DNA from: Rebecca billardiae RCC1528
Taxonomy: Eukaryota > Protista > Haptophyta
Assembly: GCA_965240325.2 (NCBI GenBank)
Contig: OZ251245.1
Span: 682,001 to 746,000, forward strand
Length of the DNA stretch: 64,000 nucleotides
Direction of reading: 5' to 3'
Shown: positions 53,009 to 61,451 of the stretch, one piece after another
Layout: every line of letters starts with the position of its first letter
Position numbering within the stretch: position 1 is the first letter of the stretch
Notes under the pieces: generated by a model
The model's database searches: none
Seen by the model: only the letters and a program-made list of their open reading frames with translations
Told to the model about the DNA's origin: nothing
Translations under genes and position numbers: made by a program

Positions 53009-54987
53009 TCACAAATATATCCCATCAGAGCCCAGCCCAGCAGCCGACCGTGCCGTCGGCTGGCGGCGGTCAGAAGTGCGGAAGCCGCATCACTTTACAA
53101 ATAACTCTTATAATTATTAATATATATATATTAATAATATAAAGTAATAACTGCTGAACCGCGGGGCCGGGCCGTCCGCGCGCCGAGTCGCGCGGTCGTG
53201 CGCGCGCGCTCGGCTGCGCCGGCTGTGATGTCACATAGAGATTCAGCCAGACATCAGCGACTTGTTATGGCGGCTGAATGCCCGATATGTCGTCGGACTT
53301 ACTTATTGACAACCGTTGCAACCCAATCGATCGAATATATAAAACTATGGTGAGATTGCTAAAATTTTAGTAGGCGGCTGATGATGAGTGCGCGTAACGT
53401 CTTAACCGCCCCTATCAGGAGTTGAACCTAGGGCCCCTATTGTTGAACGGAGGCAGTTATTTTCTCTATAGCTATGTAGCAGGCTGATGACGCGGCGGAG
53501 GCGATAGGATCAGCGGCTACCGCCGTGTGCGCCTGGCCAAGGCGCGTCCAACGAGCCCAAGAACGTCGCCATATATAGCCCGCCCCAGCGCCGTCCGCAG
53601 CCGATCATTTGCTGAAGTCAGACCTGAGAATCTGGTGTGAAAAAATGGTTTTCGGCTCCTGTAGGCCGAAGCTTCGGCCGGGAGAGCGCTATTAGCATCA
53701 AGCTTGACAAGCACGGCAAGACTAGCGCTCTCCCGGTCTCACCCAATTCGTAGTGTCACTCGCGCTCCATACATCCACGAGTGCGGCAGCGGCAAGCCGG
53801 CTGCTTGATTCCCCGTTCGGGGAGCGCCCAAAAATACAGTTATTAAGCTGCTGTGAGTGACGCGACGGACCCGGCCACCGCGCCCGCACGGAACTCTACC
53901 GATCGTACAATCGGCCGCCAGGCAGTCTTGCCGTGCTTGTCAAGCTTGATGCTGGTGTCGTGCGGCATGTTGCTGTTGCAAGCGGGGCACGATGCATTGA
54001 TGCAATGCTGAACGCATGCACCAGAGCGCGGCGGAGCATCAGGTCGTGCTTCGCTACGAGCTGACACACGCGCACCAACGCGGCCGATTACCCGGCCACT
54101 AGCAAGCTGCTCGATACGCGGCTGCGCCCCATCACCAATCGGGTTGAGGATCTGGACGCGAGTTTGGCATCCCCGGCGGCGCGGAGACGTGGCTATATTG
54201 CCTGCAGATCGGTGAGCATCCGACAGACCGCGTGCGTGCCTTCAGGTGCCGCTGCTGCACCACTACGCGCGCGCGCGATGAGCTCCGTTCAACAATAGGG
54301 GTCATTCGACCCGTCGACGCATCACCCCGCAAGTGCGCGCGCGCGCGCGCGCACGGGCGGGCGAGTTCCGAGCACCGCAGTCTCAGGGCGGTGCAGCGGC
54401 AGGACCCATACCCTGCATGCATATGGCGGTGGTGCTTGAGGAGTCTGGAACTATAGCTATCCCTCTAAGTATCCCACCCGTAAGTACACATATGCATACG
54501 AGAATGGGTAGGCACACGCGCTTCTCCTATAAATAACGAGTCTCCTATATTGATGACGACAAAAAATCACATGAACTCAAAATTCCATGGTAACCTCAGA
54601 AAAATGAGCATGGTTACCACCACTAACAGTCGAATAAATATTATCCATGAAACAAAAATTATTGCTTGTTTGCATATATATATATATATATATGGATATA
54701 CTTTTCAATAGCTACCACTAGCAGAAAGTGTACTGCAGTACTGACTCGGGGACCCCCCCGGGAGCGTGACTTGGACACGTCCCCAGACACGCTCCCCAAA
54801 AAATACGTTGGTAACCTGAGCAAAATTCAACCAGGTTACCACTGGTTACAGCCATTTGGGGGGTACGGTAGTCGAGCGACGAATATGATATGATGAACGT
54901 ACTATGACGAATATTGATCGATATGACGCGAATAAACTCGTACAGTATGGGGGTAGTCGGATTCTCGTCCGCTTCGCAGCGCAACTA

Positions 54988-55769
54988 CAGGGTCTCCAAC
55001 ATTAAACTGGACACTTTGGGCAGCAGCTCAGCGTACGGCCTGTGGCTGCCTCGCGCGGGGTCAGGAGCGGCCAGCTCGGCTCGTGTGCACCCCACTAGGT
55101 CTGTCTGCGACCGCGCATAGCCGGACAGCCCGCGTGGAGCACCCCTCTGGGTCATGCGGACAGTCGGCACAAGGCTGGTCGTGAGGGCCGTGAAGCAGCC
55201 GTGTGGCTTCTGCGCATGTCTGTAGCCAGCAAGCCCGCTCAAGGCCGCGCAGATATTATTACGTGGCATGGTCGATGACTATGCGGCATGCGCTCGACAG
55301 CCCTGGGCAAGCCCGGACGTAGCGCTACACCAGGAGTATATACGGCCCGATCGGACCAGCCTACCTGTTGCGCACCTCGCTTGCACAGCTGCTGCACAGC
55401 CCATCGATCGGCTCTGGCCGTGCAGGCAAGGGCTACAGTCGGCGCCACTACCCGCAGCGAACGCTGGAGACCCACCAGTGCGCGCACCAACCCGCCCGCC
55501 GCCAAATGCAACCGTGCGCCAGATACGAATTTTAGCAGGCATGCCACCCGCGGGGGCTCCGTGGACCTGTTCAGAGCCAACCGCTAGTCGGTTGAGCTGT
55601 ACATCCAAGCCAGCCCTGGCCACACGCTGAGCGCGCCGCTCGCTGCACCCACACCCTGTCGTCATCCGAGGAGTAAGGTCCATGGCGCTCATGTGAGCCT
55701 CTGGCCCATCTCATCGTTAGCAGCCGTAGTCAGCAAAAATCAATGTCCGACCAATTGTTGGGGACCCTG
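54988..55769 (+). repeat. Left 782-bp terminal direct repeat, a MITE-like module with bipartite 28-bp TIRs
   Basis: No differences from 58587-59368 on line-by-line comparison. Ends are CAGGGTCTCCAACA and TGTTGGGGACCCTG. Confidence 0.95.
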
Positions 55770-55880
55770 TGTGCACACTCGCTTGCCGCATGTTGAGTGA
55801 CTGTCAGCCAGGGAGCTGAAGACGACGGCTTCTCAGAGGCCGCGCGAGCTCGACGGCGGCGCGCGCGGGCACGGTGGGCT

Positions 55881-56717
55881 GGCGCGGCCCCGGCGCACGC
55901 CCATCCGGCCGCACGCCGCCGCGCCAGCCGCTCCTGCACGCGGGCTGACCGAGGCGCCAGCCTCACCCAACCGCCGCTGCTTGCCGTGGAGCTGGTCGGG
56001 AGATGATGGGGTGGGTCGGCTGCTCCCAGAAGCTCCCCACGCGCGCCGCGCGTGCTGCATGCGGGTGCGGCGGGTCGGCGCGGCCCCGCCGCGCGCCCAT
56101 CCGGCCGCGCGCCGCCGCGCCAGCCGCTCCTGCACCCGGGCTGACTCAGGCGTCAGCCTCACCCAACCGTGAGCCGCCAGCTGCTTGCCGTGGAGCTGGT
56201 CGGGAGATGATTTGGTGGGTCGGCTGCTCCCAGAAGCTCCCCACGCGCGCCGCGCGCGCTGCATACGGGTGCGGCGGGTCGGCGCGGCCCCGCCGCGCGC
56301 CCATCCGGCCGCACGCCGCCGCGCCAGCCGCTCCTGCACGCGGGCTGACTCAGGCGTCAGCCTCACCCAACCGTGAGCCGCCAGCTGCTTGCCGTGGAGC
56401 TGGTCGGGAGATGATTTGGTGGGTCGGCTGCTCCCAGAAGCTCCCCACGCGCGCCGCGCGCGCTGCATACGGGTGCGGCGGGTCGGCGCGGCCCCGCCGC
56501 GCGCCCATCCGGCCGCGCGCCGCCGCGCCAGTCGCTCCTGCACCCGCGCTGACTCAGGCGTCAGCCTCACCCAACCGTGAGCCGCCAGCTGCTTGCCGTG
56601 GAGCTGGTCGGGAGATGATGGGGTGGGTCGGCTGCTCCCAGAAGCTCCCCACGCGCGCCGCGCGCGCTGCGTGCGGGTGCGGCGGGTCGGCGCGGCCCCG
56701 CCGCGCGCCGATCCGGC
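55881..56717. repeat. 204-bp tandem repeat, ~4.1 copies, inside the element
   Basis: Units start at 55881 (shorter, diverged), 56077, 56281, 56485 and 56689 (partial). Confidence 0.92.
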
Positions 56718-56844
56718 GCCATCTAGTCCGCCGCTAAGTCATCGGCGCAGCTCAGAATCTCAGTGCCATAGCTAGGCCGCGCAGCTGCCGCCTGTTAGTG
56801 TTACTCATCGATCAGCTGATCTAAGTAATCATCAAAAGCGGCGG

Positions 56845-56889
<45 letters not shown>

Positions 56890-56900
56890 CTGCTCATTAC

Positions 56901-58154
56901 TTAGTGACCAGTGTTCGCGCCATCCTTCTTGATGCAGAGCTCGAGACGGGCGAGCCAACCATCAAACAGCTTCGTCATAAACACTTTGTCACCGGTCACC
57001 TCTGCATACATGTCCTTCACAGCCTGCTCAAAGTCCTGCTGTGACACGTACTTGCGCTGCCGCAGACCCATGCGCCGCACCATCTCAGCCCACACATTCT
57101 CAATCAATGAGAGGTCAGGGCTCAGCGCAGGCCAGTCCCAAAAGCAGCGGCGGGTAAACTTCGTAATCACCTCTCTGCACTTCTGGCCTCGCTCAGTGCT
57201 CGGATGAATAGTGTGGGCCCTCGCACCATCCTGCTGCCAGTACCAATCCTCACCTAGGTCGTTCTCTTCGAACAGCTTTGCCATGTCGCGGAGCATCTGG
57301 AGCAAGATGTCGTTCTGGTACTCCTTCGAGGTCACACCGCGCTTCTTCTTGGGCGGGGCTTCGGTGGGGTTACCATCCTCATCGTAGTCGTCAGCTTCGA
57401 CCTTGAATGCTGTACCAGAGACTTTGGTGATGAGCCTGCTCGCACCCCACCAGCAAATGGCGGCGTATGCGTGCACGCGGAAGCGGCGACCAGTCGGCGC
57501 GTCGTCAGGCTCGTGGTTCTCGCAGCGCACCTTCCACTGCCCGGTGGGCCCCAGCTCGTCCGAGATGAAGATCTTCGAGTCGCTGAAGCTCACTGACTGC
57601 TTGAACTTCTTCCTCCCTCGGTCAGTTGCCCGCTTGACGATGGCCTTACACCACGCAACGCGCTTCTTCTTGTGCGCCTTCTTGAGCGTGTACTTCTTGC
57701 CGATGCGATTCCGCGAGTAGTACGCGCTGATGCGCAGCTTGATCTCCTTGCTCCAAGTCGTGAGGCCGGCAATGCTCAGGTCGCACACCTCACGCAAGGA
57801 ATGCACCTTGCCAGTCTTGATCTTTGCTGCTGCCTCGTCAGCGTCTACTGCCGGCACGCTTGGGGGGCGGCCACGCCCTTCGAGCACCGCGCCCACCACC
57901 CCAGTCTCCTCCCACTTCTTGTAGATGTCGTACCCACCAGCCTTGCTCACACCAAACAAGCCCGCAGCGACCGCCATCGGCATGCCGTAGAGGTGAAGGA
58001 TGATGAGACCCCAGTGCCGACCCTCGCGGCTGATCTGGCTAGGGCCATCACCATGCGTGTGCTTGCGCGCACGCTCGCCCGCCTCCGCATTGGTGCCACC
58101 CCTCGTGATCCCCAGGAGCAGCATCCACCAAGCCACTGGCTGCCGCGGCGCCAT
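56901..58154 (-). CDS. Intact Tc1-like DDE transposase, 417 aa, DD42E spacing
   Basis: HTH region with GRPP; triad in FSDSK, QQDGARAH and WPALSPDLSLIENVW, with 42 residues counted between the second D and the E. Intronless and visibly less GC-rich than host genes. Confidence 0.92.
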   Translation of the reverse strand: MAPRQPVAWWMLLLGITRGGTNAEAGERARKHTHGDGPSQISREGRHWGLIILHLYGMPMAVAAGLFGVSKAGGYDIYKKWEETGVVGAVLEGRGRPPSVPAVDADEAAAKIKTGKVHSLREVCDLSIAGLTTWSKEIKLRISAYYSRNRIGKKYTLKKAHKKKRVAWCKAIVKRATDRGRKKFKQSVSFSDSKIFISDELGPTGQWKVRCENHEPDDAPTGRRFRVHAYAAICWWGASRLITKVSGTAFKVEADDYDEDGNPTEAPPKKKRGVTSKEYQNDILLQMLRDMAKLFEENDLGEDWYWQQDGARAHTIHPSTERGQKCREVITKFTRRCFWDWPALSPDLSLIENVWAEMVRRMGLRQRKYVSQQDFEQAVKDMYAEVTGDKVFMTKLFDGWLARLELCIKKDGANTGH

Positions 58155-58586
58155 GGCTGCCGAAGATCCGCACGGAATCGGCCGGGCATCAGACAGCAGT
58201 ACCCGAATAACGGTTCATCGCGCAGTAACGTCGAAAGCAATGCCTGCCGGCCGCGGCGCGCCGGCGCGCAGGTCAGCACGGCGGGCACGCGCTGGTACGG
58301 ACCACTGTGGTGCTCCTGCGAGCAGCTGCTGACGCGTTGGCGCGATGAGACCAGCGTCCTCGCAAACCCGTGACCAGGTGGCCCAGTGCCACTGCCCTGC
58401 CTCCACACGCTAGTCGAGGGAGTGACGCGTGCCGAATGTGTCTCGCCGGATGACCACCAAGGCTGCTGTCAATAAATATGAGGTGGGTCTCGTCGACAAC
58501 CCGAACTGCTGGGTGTCTATTTGAAATATACTCCGCAGATTCTGCCAGTGGCAGCTACGGAGCTACGCTCGTCGCCGAGATACCTT

Positions 58587-59368
58587 CAGGGTCTCCAACA
58601 TTAAACTGGACACTTTGGGCAGCAGCTCAGCGTACGGCCTGTGGCTGCCTCGCGCGGGGTCAGGAGCGGCCAGCTCGGCTCGTGTGCACCCCACTAGGTC
58701 TGTCTGCGACCGCGCATAGCCGGACAGCCCGCGTGGAGCACCCCTCTGGGTCATGCGGACAGTCGGCACAAGGCTGGTCGTGAGGGCCGTGAAGCAGCCG
58801 TGTGGCTTCTGCGCATGTCTGTAGCCAGCAAGCCCGCTCAAGGCCGCGCAGATATTATTACGTGGCATGGTCGATGACTATGCGGCATGCGCTCGACAGC
58901 CCTGGGCAAGCCCGGACGTAGCGCTACACCAGGAGTATATACGGCCCGATCGGACCAGCCTACCTGTTGCGCACCTCGCTTGCACAGCTGCTGCACAGCC
59001 CATCGATCGGCTCTGGCCGTGCAGGCAAGGGCTACAGTCGGCGCCACTACCCGCAGCGAACGCTGGAGACCCACCAGTGCGCGCACCAACCCGCCCGCCG
59101 CCAAATGCAACCGTGCGCCAGATACGAATTTTAGCAGGCATGCCACCCGCGGGGGCTCCGTGGACCTGTTCAGAGCCAACCGCTAGTCGGTTGAGCTGTA
59201 CATCCAAGCCAGCCCTGGCCACACGCTGAGCGCGCCGCTCGCTGCACCCACACCCTGTCGTCATCCGAGGAGTAAGGTCCATGGCGCTCATGTGAGCCTC
59301 TGGCCCATCTCATCGTTAGCAGCCGTAGTCAGCAAAAATCAATGTCCGACCAATTGTTGGGGACCCTG
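58587..59368 (+). repeat. Right 782-bp terminal direct repeat
   Basis: Same sequence as 54988-55769, offset 3,599 bp. Confidence 0.95.
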
Positions 59369-59375
59369 TACTACG

Positions 59376-61451
59376 ATGGCGGCGCCACGCGCCGTTTGCC
59401 CGCTGGGCGCGCTGCTGCCGCTGCTGCTCGGCGCAGCGGGCAGCCTGGCGTTACGGCGCGACGCACGCCCGAGCCAGCTGCCCCCCCCTTTCGAGTGCGA
59501 GTGCTTCGGCCTCTGCGCCGAGGACGAGTTCGTCGACACGCTCGCGCGGCTGCCGGTCGTGCGAAGCACCGACTCGCCGTGGTACGCGTACCTGACGGCG
59601 GTGTACGGCGAGGCCGTGCCGCTGCCGGTTCAGATGGGCAGCTTCGAGCTCTTCTACACCGCGCTCCTCCCCACACGCCAGTGCCGCGTGCCGCCCGCGC
59701 CGCCGCGGCCCGCGTGCGCGCCGGCCGTGTGCGCTCGGTGGATCCACCCCAGGCGGCTGCCGGCCAACGCAAGCGCCGAGGGGAGCAGGCGTCAGAGAGC
59801 GCGGCGGTCGAGCCTGATCTTCTACGCCGGGCGGTCGAACTACAGCTTCGTCGCGCTGCAGCCCCCGGCGCACCAGCGCCGCGCCTTCCTCTCGTACGAG
59901 TGGGCCGAGGTGGTGCGCGCCGCCTACTTTGCGACACCCGAGGGCCCCGAGTACGGCGCCTGGTTCTACCCGGTCCGGGGCTCGGGCGTGTGGCTCAACG
60001 TGGGGCGCACGGCGAGCTATGCGGGCGTCGGGGACTTCGAGCGCGCGCTCCGGCCGCGCGTCAACCCGCTCCTCCTCAGGCACATGCCGCCAGGCAAGAC
60101 CGGCTGGAGAGAGGTGCAAGGAGCGTTCCTGCGCTGCAACGGTGAGGCGGAAGGCGCGGGCGCGGGCCGGCCGAGTGGCGCGGGCGCGCCTCCGCACGCC
60201 GCCTCTGCAAAGCGGCCGTGGTTCGAGTGTGCGCCCGACCGCTTCCACGCCGCTGCGGTGCGCGCGTCGAGGTACGACTCGGCGCAGCGGCGCTCGACGC
60301 ACGGACGCACAGTCGGCTTCATCGAGCGGCTGGTGCACACATCTCCCGCACACGAGATTGTGGTCGCCACAGGCGAGAGCTCGGTGCCGCGCGGCGCGCG
60401 CTCCGGGTGCGTGGGCGGCCTGCGCGCGGGCTGGCGCGCGTCGCGGCCGTGCGCGTGCCTCGACGACCCGGTGCTCAACTGCGGCGCGATCGCGCACCTG
60501 CAGCCACCCGCGGAGGAGTGGCTTGGCGCGCGGACGGCGGTTGGCGAGCTTGAGGGCGCGGCGGCGCAGCTGCCACATCACTCCGTCGCCCCGCCCTACC
60601 CGGCCGCTCCGATGAACTCCAGCTTCTTCAAGCCCTGGCCCGGACAGCCGGCCGCGCCTTCGCAGTTCTGCACGGAGCACTGGTGCGGCAGGGGGTGCTG
60701 CGCGCGCTGCGAGCAGCGCGCGCAGCGGCCGCGCGTCCTCTTCGCGCACACCGAGAAGACGGGCGGCTCCGCCGTGGAGTGCGCGACCGTCGACCTCGCC
60801 CTGCAGGGCGCGTGGCTCAACATGGGGCACACGACCGCCGGCGCCCTCCGCTGGTGCGCGCGCAAGTGCGCGGCCAGGCCTGCGCCGACGCCGCAGGGCA
60901 TCCCGCTCGCCATCTCGGTGCGCGACCCGTACACCTACTACCAGTCGAGCTACGCGTACACTCGCCAGGCGGCGCGGGACCCGGCGACCCTCTCCTACTG
61001 CTACTGGCTGCTGAACGCCTCCGTGTTCGAGCGGGGCAACCCGTACGCCGTGGGCACGCCGCGCTCGCCGCTCGCCTCGTTCGACAACTTCGTGCGCTGG
61101 GTGACGTCCAACGAGACGATGCTCACGCAGTCGTGGCGCGTGGCGCGCGCGTGCGGCCAGCCGTGCGCGCGCGCGCACGTGCTGCGCACAGAGCACCTGG
61201 AGGCCGACCTGAACACGGCGCTGCAGCGCGCAGGCATCCGCGTCGGGCCGCTCCGGCTGCCGCGGCACAATGTCGCCGCCGCGGACGTCCGGGTGCAGCA
61301 GAGCCAGGGGGGCGCCGGTGCCGCCGCCGGGGGGCGGGTGGTCTGGACGTGTGCGTCGCTCGAGCTCGTGAATGCGGCGGAGGCGAGTATCTTCGACCAG
61401 TTCGGCTACGCGAGGCGGAACTGTTCTGACGACAGTGTCGGCGTGCACTGA
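59376..61451 (+). CDS. Secreted or lumenal protein (691 aa): uncharacterised N-terminal domain plus Sulfotransfer_2-type sulfotransferase domain
   Basis: Signal peptide; 5'-PAPS-binding motif FAHTEKTGGSAV; 3' motif SVRDPYTYYQSSYAY; VLRTEHLEADL...LPRHN. Confidence 0.75.
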   Translation: MAAPRAVCPLGALLPLLLGAAGSLALRRDARPSQLPPPFECECFGLCAEDEFVDTLARLPVVRSTDSPWYAYLTAVYGEAVPLPVQMGSFELFYTALLPTRQCRVPPAPPRPACAPAVCARWIHPRRLPANASAEGSRRQRARRSSLIFYAGRSNYSFVALQPPAHQRRAFLSYEWAEVVRAAYFATPEGPEYGAWFYPVRGSGVWLNVGRTASYAGVGDFERALRPRVNPLLLRHMPPGKTGWREVQGAFLRCNGEAEGAGAGRPSGAGAPPHAASAKRPWFECAPDRFHAAAVRASRYDSAQRRSTHGRTVGFIERLVHTSPAHEIVVATGESSVPRGARSGCVGGLRAGWRASRPCACLDDPVLNCGAIAHLQPPAEEWLGARTAVGELEGAAAQLPHHSVAPPYPAAPMNSSFFKPWPGQPAAPSQFCTEHWCGRGCCARCEQRAQRPRVLFAHTEKTGGSAVECATVDLALQGAWLNMGHTTAGALRWCARKCAARPAPTPQGIPLAISVRDPYTYYQSSYAYTRQAARDPATLSYCYWLLNASVFERGNPYAVGTPRSPLASFDNFVRWVTSNETMLTQSWRVARACGQPCARAHVLRTEHLEADLNTALQRAGIRVGPLRLPRHNVAAADVRVQQSQGGAGAAAGGRVVWTCASLELVNAAEASIFDQFGYARRNCSDDSVGVH

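Follow-up and report, generated by a model that had tools for sequence, protein, structure and literature searches.

Long direct terminal repeats count as a hallmark of retroelements, and composite transposons are seen as an accident of bacteria. Tc1/mariner, the superfamily from which Sleeping Beauty comes, is the best understood group of cut-and-paste transposons. When KolobokP, a group of animal DNA transposons of composite-like build, was described in 2022, it stood as the unique exception among eukaryotes (Kojima and Bao 2022, PMC9587614). In KolobokP, two copies of a long terminal direct repeat (LTDR) enclose an internal region (INT) with the transposase in it, and each LTDR has short inverted ends of its own; many solo LTDRs, (LTDR-INT)n-LTDR multimers, a constrained LTDR length and INT-INT joints, the last ascribed to LTDR excision, complete the picture (PMC9587614). 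Here we describe an element with the same LTDR-INT-LTDR build and a Tc1/mariner-fold transposase in the haptophyte alga Rebecca billardiae RCC1528, located at positions 54988 to 59368 of a 64,000-nucleotide stretch that we refer to as the window (contig 29:682001-746000 of a 72-Mb, 41-contig genome assembly). We consider it very probable that this is a Tc1-type element moved whole by the transposase that its own INT encodes. Full-text literature searches found no Tc1/mariner/IS630 equivalent of this build described, the sole eukaryotic DNA-transposon precedent being KolobokP; that precedent does mean that the architecture itself is not new.

The unit reads, in order, TA, a 782-bp module, a 2817-bp core, a copy of the module in the same orientation and TA, with about 4.4 kb between the two TAs. 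The left module, or left LTDR (54988..55769, plus strand), starts with CAGGG and ends with CCCTG, and the right LTDR (58587..59368, plus strand) is 100% identical to it (782 of 782 positions by BLAST, direct orientation). Outside them lie the two copies of the putative TA target-site duplication (54986..54987 and 59369..59370), and inside them TG at 55770-71 and TT at 58585-86, the latter immediately preceding the right LTDR. Each module has its own pair of inverted ends, giving two left and two right ends per unit. In the left module, the left terminal inverted repeat (54988..55015, plus strand) consists of a 14-nt core, a 7-nt spacer and a GGACA motif, and the right one (55742..55769, minus strand) is an inner end with TG next to it; 13 of the 14 terminal bases match between a module's two ends, with GGACA 7 bases further in. 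This bipartite motif of inverted-repeat core plus GGACA is restricted within the unit to the four module ends, and no extra transposase-binding motifs were found in the array or the core. The outer ends of the unit are inverted to each other over only about 28 nt, so that no classical single inverted-repeat pair directly bounds the element. A core with degenerate inverted ends of its own was also considered and rejected, as its ends, on reading, have no inverted similarity. The layout given in the initial annotation thus proved exact, base for base, together with its bipartite inverted repeats on each module and its observation that only the outer ends abut TA.

The core, or INT (55770..58586), was found in the genome solely between modules. 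It contains an intact gene for a 417-aa Tc1/mariner-fold DDE transposase on the minus strand (56901..58154; D192, D309 and E352) and, downstream of the stop codon, a 204-bp tandem array (55881..56717; 4.1 copies by Tandem Repeats Finder, GC about 0.77), with a (TC)n microsatellite directly past the stop codon (56848..56878). The 432 bp upstream of the transposase start codon (58155..58586, minus strand) form a putative promoter and leader. We found no second credible open reading frame (ORF) in the INT, every other ORF being either part of the GC-rich array or antisense to the gene for the transposase, and the two module ORFs scanned gave no Pfam match; by their sequence, the LTDRs are non-coding.

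Across the genome we counted about 46 left and about 46 right module ends, including, outside the inspected loci, ends at about 727.6-729.7 kb on contig 13, at about 3.95 Mb on contig 3 and on contig 27. Composite loci number 12 on 10 contigs, window included, and lie in unrelated flanking DNA; since the arrangement recurs at 11 other loci, it is far beyond chance. The inner joints are constant in all composites, with TT before the module and TG after it, and the genome search found no core outside module brackets. A second autonomous copy, on contig 20, has a 99.5% identical core, an identical protein and different flanking DNA. At least 10 transposase-deleted derivatives stand at unrelated sites, their deletion, formed at a short microhomology, spans from within the 204-bp array up to base two of the transposase start codon; it takes out the ORF precisely and leaves the 432-bp upstream region in place in every case. 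The number of array units differs between loci (the window versus L033-L041). In addition to the composites there are about 17 solo modules, TA-flanked solos among them. TA is present on both outer sides in 19 of 19 scorable insertions (11 composites and 8 solos; 20 loci have complete outer ends, and the left module of the twentieth, L032, is interrupted), and composites and solos have one target preference in common, which is palindromic and roughly TA-S-TA-S-TA. These data support transposition of the module-core-module unit as one piece into TA sites. The initial annotation had proposed such whole-unit movement of a eukaryotic composite, and the genome-wide comparison of solos with full units upholds it: unrelated flanks, the same TT and TG joints and TA outside are what the 12 loci have in common.

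Several features of individual insertions were recorded along the way. Among L034, L041, L046 and L031, several insertion sites coincide with a short palindrome, a local tandem repeat or a run of (TA)n. At L032 (contig 29:1191608-1197385), a transposase-deleted copy, only module positions 433-782 adjoin the core on the left, and a matching left module end lies about 3.4 kb upstream, suggesting a nested insertion of about 2.6 kb.

Three loci depart from the simple unit. L040 is module-core-module-core-module, L038 is module-core-core-module, and L039 is module-core-core-core-module-core-module. Family 1, as we call the elements related to the window unit, has exactly three core-core joints in the genome (in L038 and L039), each of which reads TT-CAG-TG, that is, both inner flanks with three module-end bases between them. 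Canonical Sleeping Beauty excision footprints are TAC(A/T)GTA and arise from cuts staggered by 3 nt (bioRxiv 10.1101/659086); TT-CAG-TG is their exact counterpart. On this reading of the joints, at least one Tc1-type excision has removed an inner module by itself. The CAG remnant at all three core-core joints means that the inner ends are not completely silent, which contradicts the initial annotation's claim that they were silenced. The family is probably still active, as indicated by two autonomous copies with identical proteins, near-identical derivatives and clean footprints.

Assignment of the transposase draws on sequence and predicted structure. On its own, the 417-aa sequence matches the Sleeping Beauty catalytic domain in PDB (E 1.2e-5), and Pfam DDE_3 scores 27.4 bits on it, just below the 28.6-bit cut-off. 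We also built a clade profile (A1), combining the 417-aa protein with eight relatives from databases and with the genome's two paralogous families; its match to the Sleeping Beauty catalytic domain has E 2.8e-15, with the catalytic triad aligned. D192, D309 and E352 are invariant in the A1 alignment, 42 residues separate the second D from the E, and the SPDLSLIEN motif around E352 is a Tc1 signature. For an AlphaFold model with a mean predicted local distance difference test score (pLDDT) of 75.6, all 18 significant Foldseek matches are full-length Mos1 transpososome chains, SETMAR or Sleeping Beauty, with target-normalised template modelling (TM) scores of 0.73-0.83 to the catalytic domains of these three. 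The N-terminal region is modelled with helices at residues 43-139 and low confidence at residues 1-40; its helix-turn-helix (HTH) signal is weak (Pax paired domains at E 0.045-0.4, with full-length Mos1 as the top Foldseek match), and relatives carry weak HTH Pfam matches. Close relatives amount to only about a dozen among 5.8 billion clustered proteins, and the protein search placed them as a distinct top group above the bulk of 350-aa Tc1/IS630-like proteins. The ORF thus encodes a Tc1/mariner-fold DDE transposase of a sparsely populated clade, and the Tc1 transposase of the initial annotation is borne out by both the A1 profile and the Foldseek matches.

Searching the genome with this transposase, we found two further families whose transposases show 23-34% identity. 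Family 1 has 782-bp LTDRs with CAG..CTG ends, a 204-bp array unit, a 417-aa transposase, outer TA, inner TT/TG and CAG at core-core joints. Family 2 (L054) has a 100% identical pair of 794-bp LTDRs with TAG..CTA ends, a 417-bp array unit, a 433-aa transposase, outer TA, inner CT/AG, TA at core-core joints and long multimers. Family 3 (L053) has an 812-bp LTDR, a 415-bp array unit, a 438-aa transposase, outer TA and inner CT/AG; core-core joints were not seen in it, and its full right LTDR lies outside the sequence read. In families 2 and 3 the array is again downstream of the ORF, and the order and orientation of the parts are as in family 1. An environmental scaffold of 57% GC (L085) reads LTDR-INT-INT-LTDR-INT, with 796-bp LTDRs ending in TAG..CTA, a 410-aa transposase (relative P0018), outer TA (left only), inner CA/TG, TA at the core-core joint and no array noted. 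LTDR length therefore ranges from 782 to 812 bp across the three families and L085. The LTDR sequences are too diverged for alignment across families and align reliably only at the ends and at one central 15-nt motif, TCGATCGGCTCTGGC, common to families 1 and 2 (window 55400-55435; L054 at about 1330-1360); the satellite array is conserved among families in position and not in sequence.

In a quick maximum-likelihood tree, the LTDR-bearing transposases group together (Shimodaira-Hasegawa approximate likelihood ratio test, SH-aLRT, 88) inside a clade whose support is strong (96), and metagenomic relatives with ordinary inverted ends fall elsewhere. The metagenome scan gave mostly distant Tc1-like genes with classical inverted ends; the sole close relative in it, L060, has a downstream tandem array and is too short to show LTDRs. 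In L056, L083 and L086, which are short contigs that encode further relatives, the two termini overlap by exactly one LTDR+INT period, and candidate modules of 760-776 bp are bounded by 12-nt inverted ends; we take both features as suggestive only. No clade member with a plain inverted-end pair was found in this genome. Because two other families and an environmental relative have direct repeats of about 780-812 bp around a transposase, with TA outside and non-TA inside, the LTDR-INT-LTDR build is, as read from these sequences, a trait of the lineage. The boundaries in families 2 and 3 and in L085 could also be drawn so that the LTDR starts at GGG, in which case TA stands on all four sides and a core-core TA is an unoccupied site. 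We prefer this less, as all five outer flanks read TA-TA-G and the TAG..CTA ends, which leave a 2-nt remnant, align with the CAG of family 1; with the preferred TAG..CTA ends, the inner joints of these families are non-TA, as in the window unit.

Family 2 also forms long arrays of core units with a spacing of 3999-4832 bp, at L051, L052 and L055 (contigs 7, 30 and 3; L055 includes a stretch of N) and at contig 1:2.33-2.42 Mb. The units are joined directly by TA with no repeat between them, and many have intact 456-458-codon frames.

Set beside KolobokP, the family 1 elements have LTDRs with inverted ends, an internal transposase, about 17 solos, an LTDR-INT-LTDR-INT-LTDR multimer (L040), INT-INT joints (L038 and L039) and a constrained LTDR length. 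KolobokP encodes a Kolobok transposase, whereas the enzyme here is a Tc1/mariner-fold DDE transposase with TA duplication and a CAG footprint; KolobokP carries a homing endonuclease of the His-Me finger type, whereas a satellite array is the only other internal feature here. The LTDRs are about 450 or about 660 bp in KolobokP and about 780-810 bp here, excision there loses 1-5 flanking bases whereas here it leaves a clean Tc1-type footprint, and the hosts are animals in one case and a GC-rich alga in the other. Membership in the KolobokP lineage was rejected on the Tc1/mariner-fold transposase and the lack of a second credible ORF in the INT. Comparison with classical Tc1/mariner elements (Sleeping Beauty, Tc1/Tc3 and Mos1) and with Stowaway-like transposable elements of the miniature inverted-repeat kind (MITEs) shows both likenesses and differences. 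Fold and catalytic triad, TA duplication, ends starting with CAG, a 3-nt excision footprint, a palindromic TA-rich target preference and deletion derivatives at short microhomologies are all held in common, and a DDE/D RNase H-fold domain, TA insertion and a 2-3-nt excision footprint place the element with IS630/Tc1/mariner. Classical elements, in contrast, have one inverted-end pair bounding the gene and 34 residues between the second D and the E, whereas here the ends lie in two direct 782-bp MITE-like modules, providing four usable ends, and the spacing is 42. The element fits Tc1/mariner by its enzyme and works like KolobokP without being one.

Two more distant models share parts of this architecture. 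In bacterial composites (Tn5, Tn10 and Tn630 of the IS630 family, PMC11544213), two module copies likewise bracket a centre and the outer ends move the whole, but there the modules are transposase-encoding insertion sequences and the centre is cargo, whereas here the modules are non-coding and the transposase is central. Bacterial composites are also opportunistic, whereas this build is conserved across divergent families. We rejected a bacterial-type composite transposon on modules without a Pfam-recognisable ORF and a transposase in the centre. Long terminal repeat (LTR) retrotransposons share with the element long direct repeats at the termini, solo repeats and multimers in tandem, and the repeat lying next to the gene's 5' side could provide a promoter. 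However, there is no reverse transcriptase or integrase here, the ends are CAG..CTG and not TG..CA, the target duplication is a 2-bp TA and not 4-6 bp, and private differences between repeats indicate that these are not regenerated each cycle. An LTR retrotransposon was rejected, the only gene being a DDE transposase and the ends and TA duplication being as described.

The identity of the two repeats, which the initial annotation had attributed to homogenisation or regeneration during transposition, requires neither. Family 1 modules have 21 variable alignment columns across 35 copies and differ from one another at 0-6 positions, which by sequence divergence makes the family very young. Six sites separate autonomous-type from derivative-type modules, and solos of both types exist along with intermediates; one solo in opposite orientation, about 850 bp from the second autonomous copy (L031:1061-1842, contig 20:1679960-1680741), is a mosaic of autonomous-type and derivative-type variants. 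Three elements (the contig-20 copy, L035 and L040) have a private difference between their own two repeats, demonstrating that repeats are not rebuilt from one template at each move. Together, the youth of the family and these private differences remove the need for LTR-like regeneration. In L037, a private substitution is present in both repeats, and in the trimer L040, a private 2-bp insertion is present in two of three modules; L040 shows a route to the L037 state, by unequal-exchange multimerisation followed by mobilisation of a sub-unit.

In the window, the right end of the element lies 5 bp upstream of an ATG at 59376 that opens, within 59371-61451, a 691-codon GC-rich ORF with a signal-peptide-like start and no Pfam match, and on the left flank positions 54600-54900 form a low-GC island (0.42). 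The insertion thus lies at the promoter or the 5' border of what is probably a host gene.

From these observations we propose the following mechanism. The INT-encoded transposase would bring together the unit's two outer ends, the left one from the first LTDR and the right one from the second, cut at this pair and insert the whole 4.4-kb unit into a TA, which would be duplicated. The same transposase would also use both ends of one LTDR, excising it with a 3-nt CAG footprint left behind, which would break up the composite, and the excised single LTDR would presumably reinsert and seed solos. Unequal exchange between LTDRs may generate the multimers that we observe, as well as further solos; solo modules could come either from repeat-repeat recombination or from single-module transposition. 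A short single module would be expected to be the better substrate, so something would have to protect the composite. In all four lineages, a single feature consistently sets the inner ends apart from the outer ones, namely that they never adjoin TA, and the flanking TA contributes to cleavage in Sleeping Beauty (bioRxiv 10.1101/659086). For these two reasons we prefer the explanation, which is not absolute, that non-TA inner flanks probably handicap the inner ends kinetically, enough for the composite to persist. The LTDRs might in addition provide a promoter and a terminator, and unequal exchange between them might add copies.

Composites could instead have been built in place. Here solos transpose, a circle of one LTDR plus INT, released when two LTDRs recombine, integrates by homologous recombination into a resident solo, and cut-and-paste of the whole unit is rare or absent. 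TA-flanked composites with constant inner joints at many sites are predicted equally by this route, and the data include solos, multimers and, among metagenome contigs, short ones whose ends overlap by one LTDR+INT period; the KolobokP authors consider such a translocatable-unit route, which is also discussed for IS26 (PMC9587614). However, we observed neither a circle junction nor a solo-then-loaded site, and terminal overlaps in short-read contigs are equally expected from repeat collapse. The outer ends are intact Tc1-type ends beside TA, and composites and solos have one target preference, as direct transposition predicts, while the presence of the L037 variant in both LTDRs is unlike the outcome of a single crossover with a circle. 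We regard assembly in place as unlikely, and favor transposition of the whole unit.

Among other eukaryotic DNA transposons, closely linked elements are known to mobilise as composites, and two nearby ordinary MITEs might have mobilised the DNA between them as a macrotransposon, a recent accident of family 1 alone. The youth of family 1 suits such an origin, and bacterial analogues are discussed (PMC11544213), but three families with transposases only 23-34% identical agree in the order and orientation of parts, in LTDR lengths of 782-812 bp and in having non-TA inner joints; the same build is present in an environmental relative, which differs in GC content, and this genome yielded no clade member with plain inverted ends. 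An opportunistic origin is accordingly quite improbable. Two 100% identical 782-bp repeats can also confuse assemblers, and the initial annotation had itself raised a misassembled single element, or two independent MITE insertions bracketing a transposase gene that has other ends elsewhere. The core, though, is found only between modules, at 12 loci on 10 contigs with constant inner joints, and independent insertions would have produced TA at these joints, where none stands; two other families moreover repeat the build, as does an unrelated metagenome scaffold. Misassembly is very unlikely given this recurrence, and we give a one-off at this locus almost no credence.

Several observations weigh against a composite moved whole and protected by its inner flanks. 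We recovered no empty site, and the TA duplication is read from the flanks alone; the case for a correct assembly is the recurrence of the build at 12 loci among its 41 contigs; and support for the LTDR-bearing clade is only moderate (SH-aLRT 88). The three footprints may descend from one or two events, and unequal exchange can duplicate core-core pairs, just as transposition can move them as passengers. An outer module is absent in 0 of 24 outer positions, yet inner LTDRs, which have non-TA flanks on both sides, have been lost, a pattern that does not fit a simple rule in which a non-TA flank blocks cutting.

Movement of the whole unit by its own transposase remains the reading that we favor. 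For the broader proposition the balance seems to us about even: that these elements form a sustained algal and other protist Tc1/IS630-type lineage with an obligate LTDR-INT-LTDR build, with length-constrained, MITE-competent LTDRs of about 800 bp, with non-TA inner joints that bias the enzyme toward the whole unit and with a satellite array in place of a homing endonuclease, and so represent an independent, convergent origin of LTR-shaped DNA transposons. For annotation, the consequence is that LTR finders and terminal-inverted-repeat finders will both misclassify such elements. A second, unrelated superfamily with this build would show it to be a recurrent evolutionary solution. Because the family looks active and its enzymology has well-worked assays, three questions become directly testable: the basis on which a transposase selects from four equivalent ends, the part played by the flanking TA in that selection and the way in which MITE families bud off an autonomous element.

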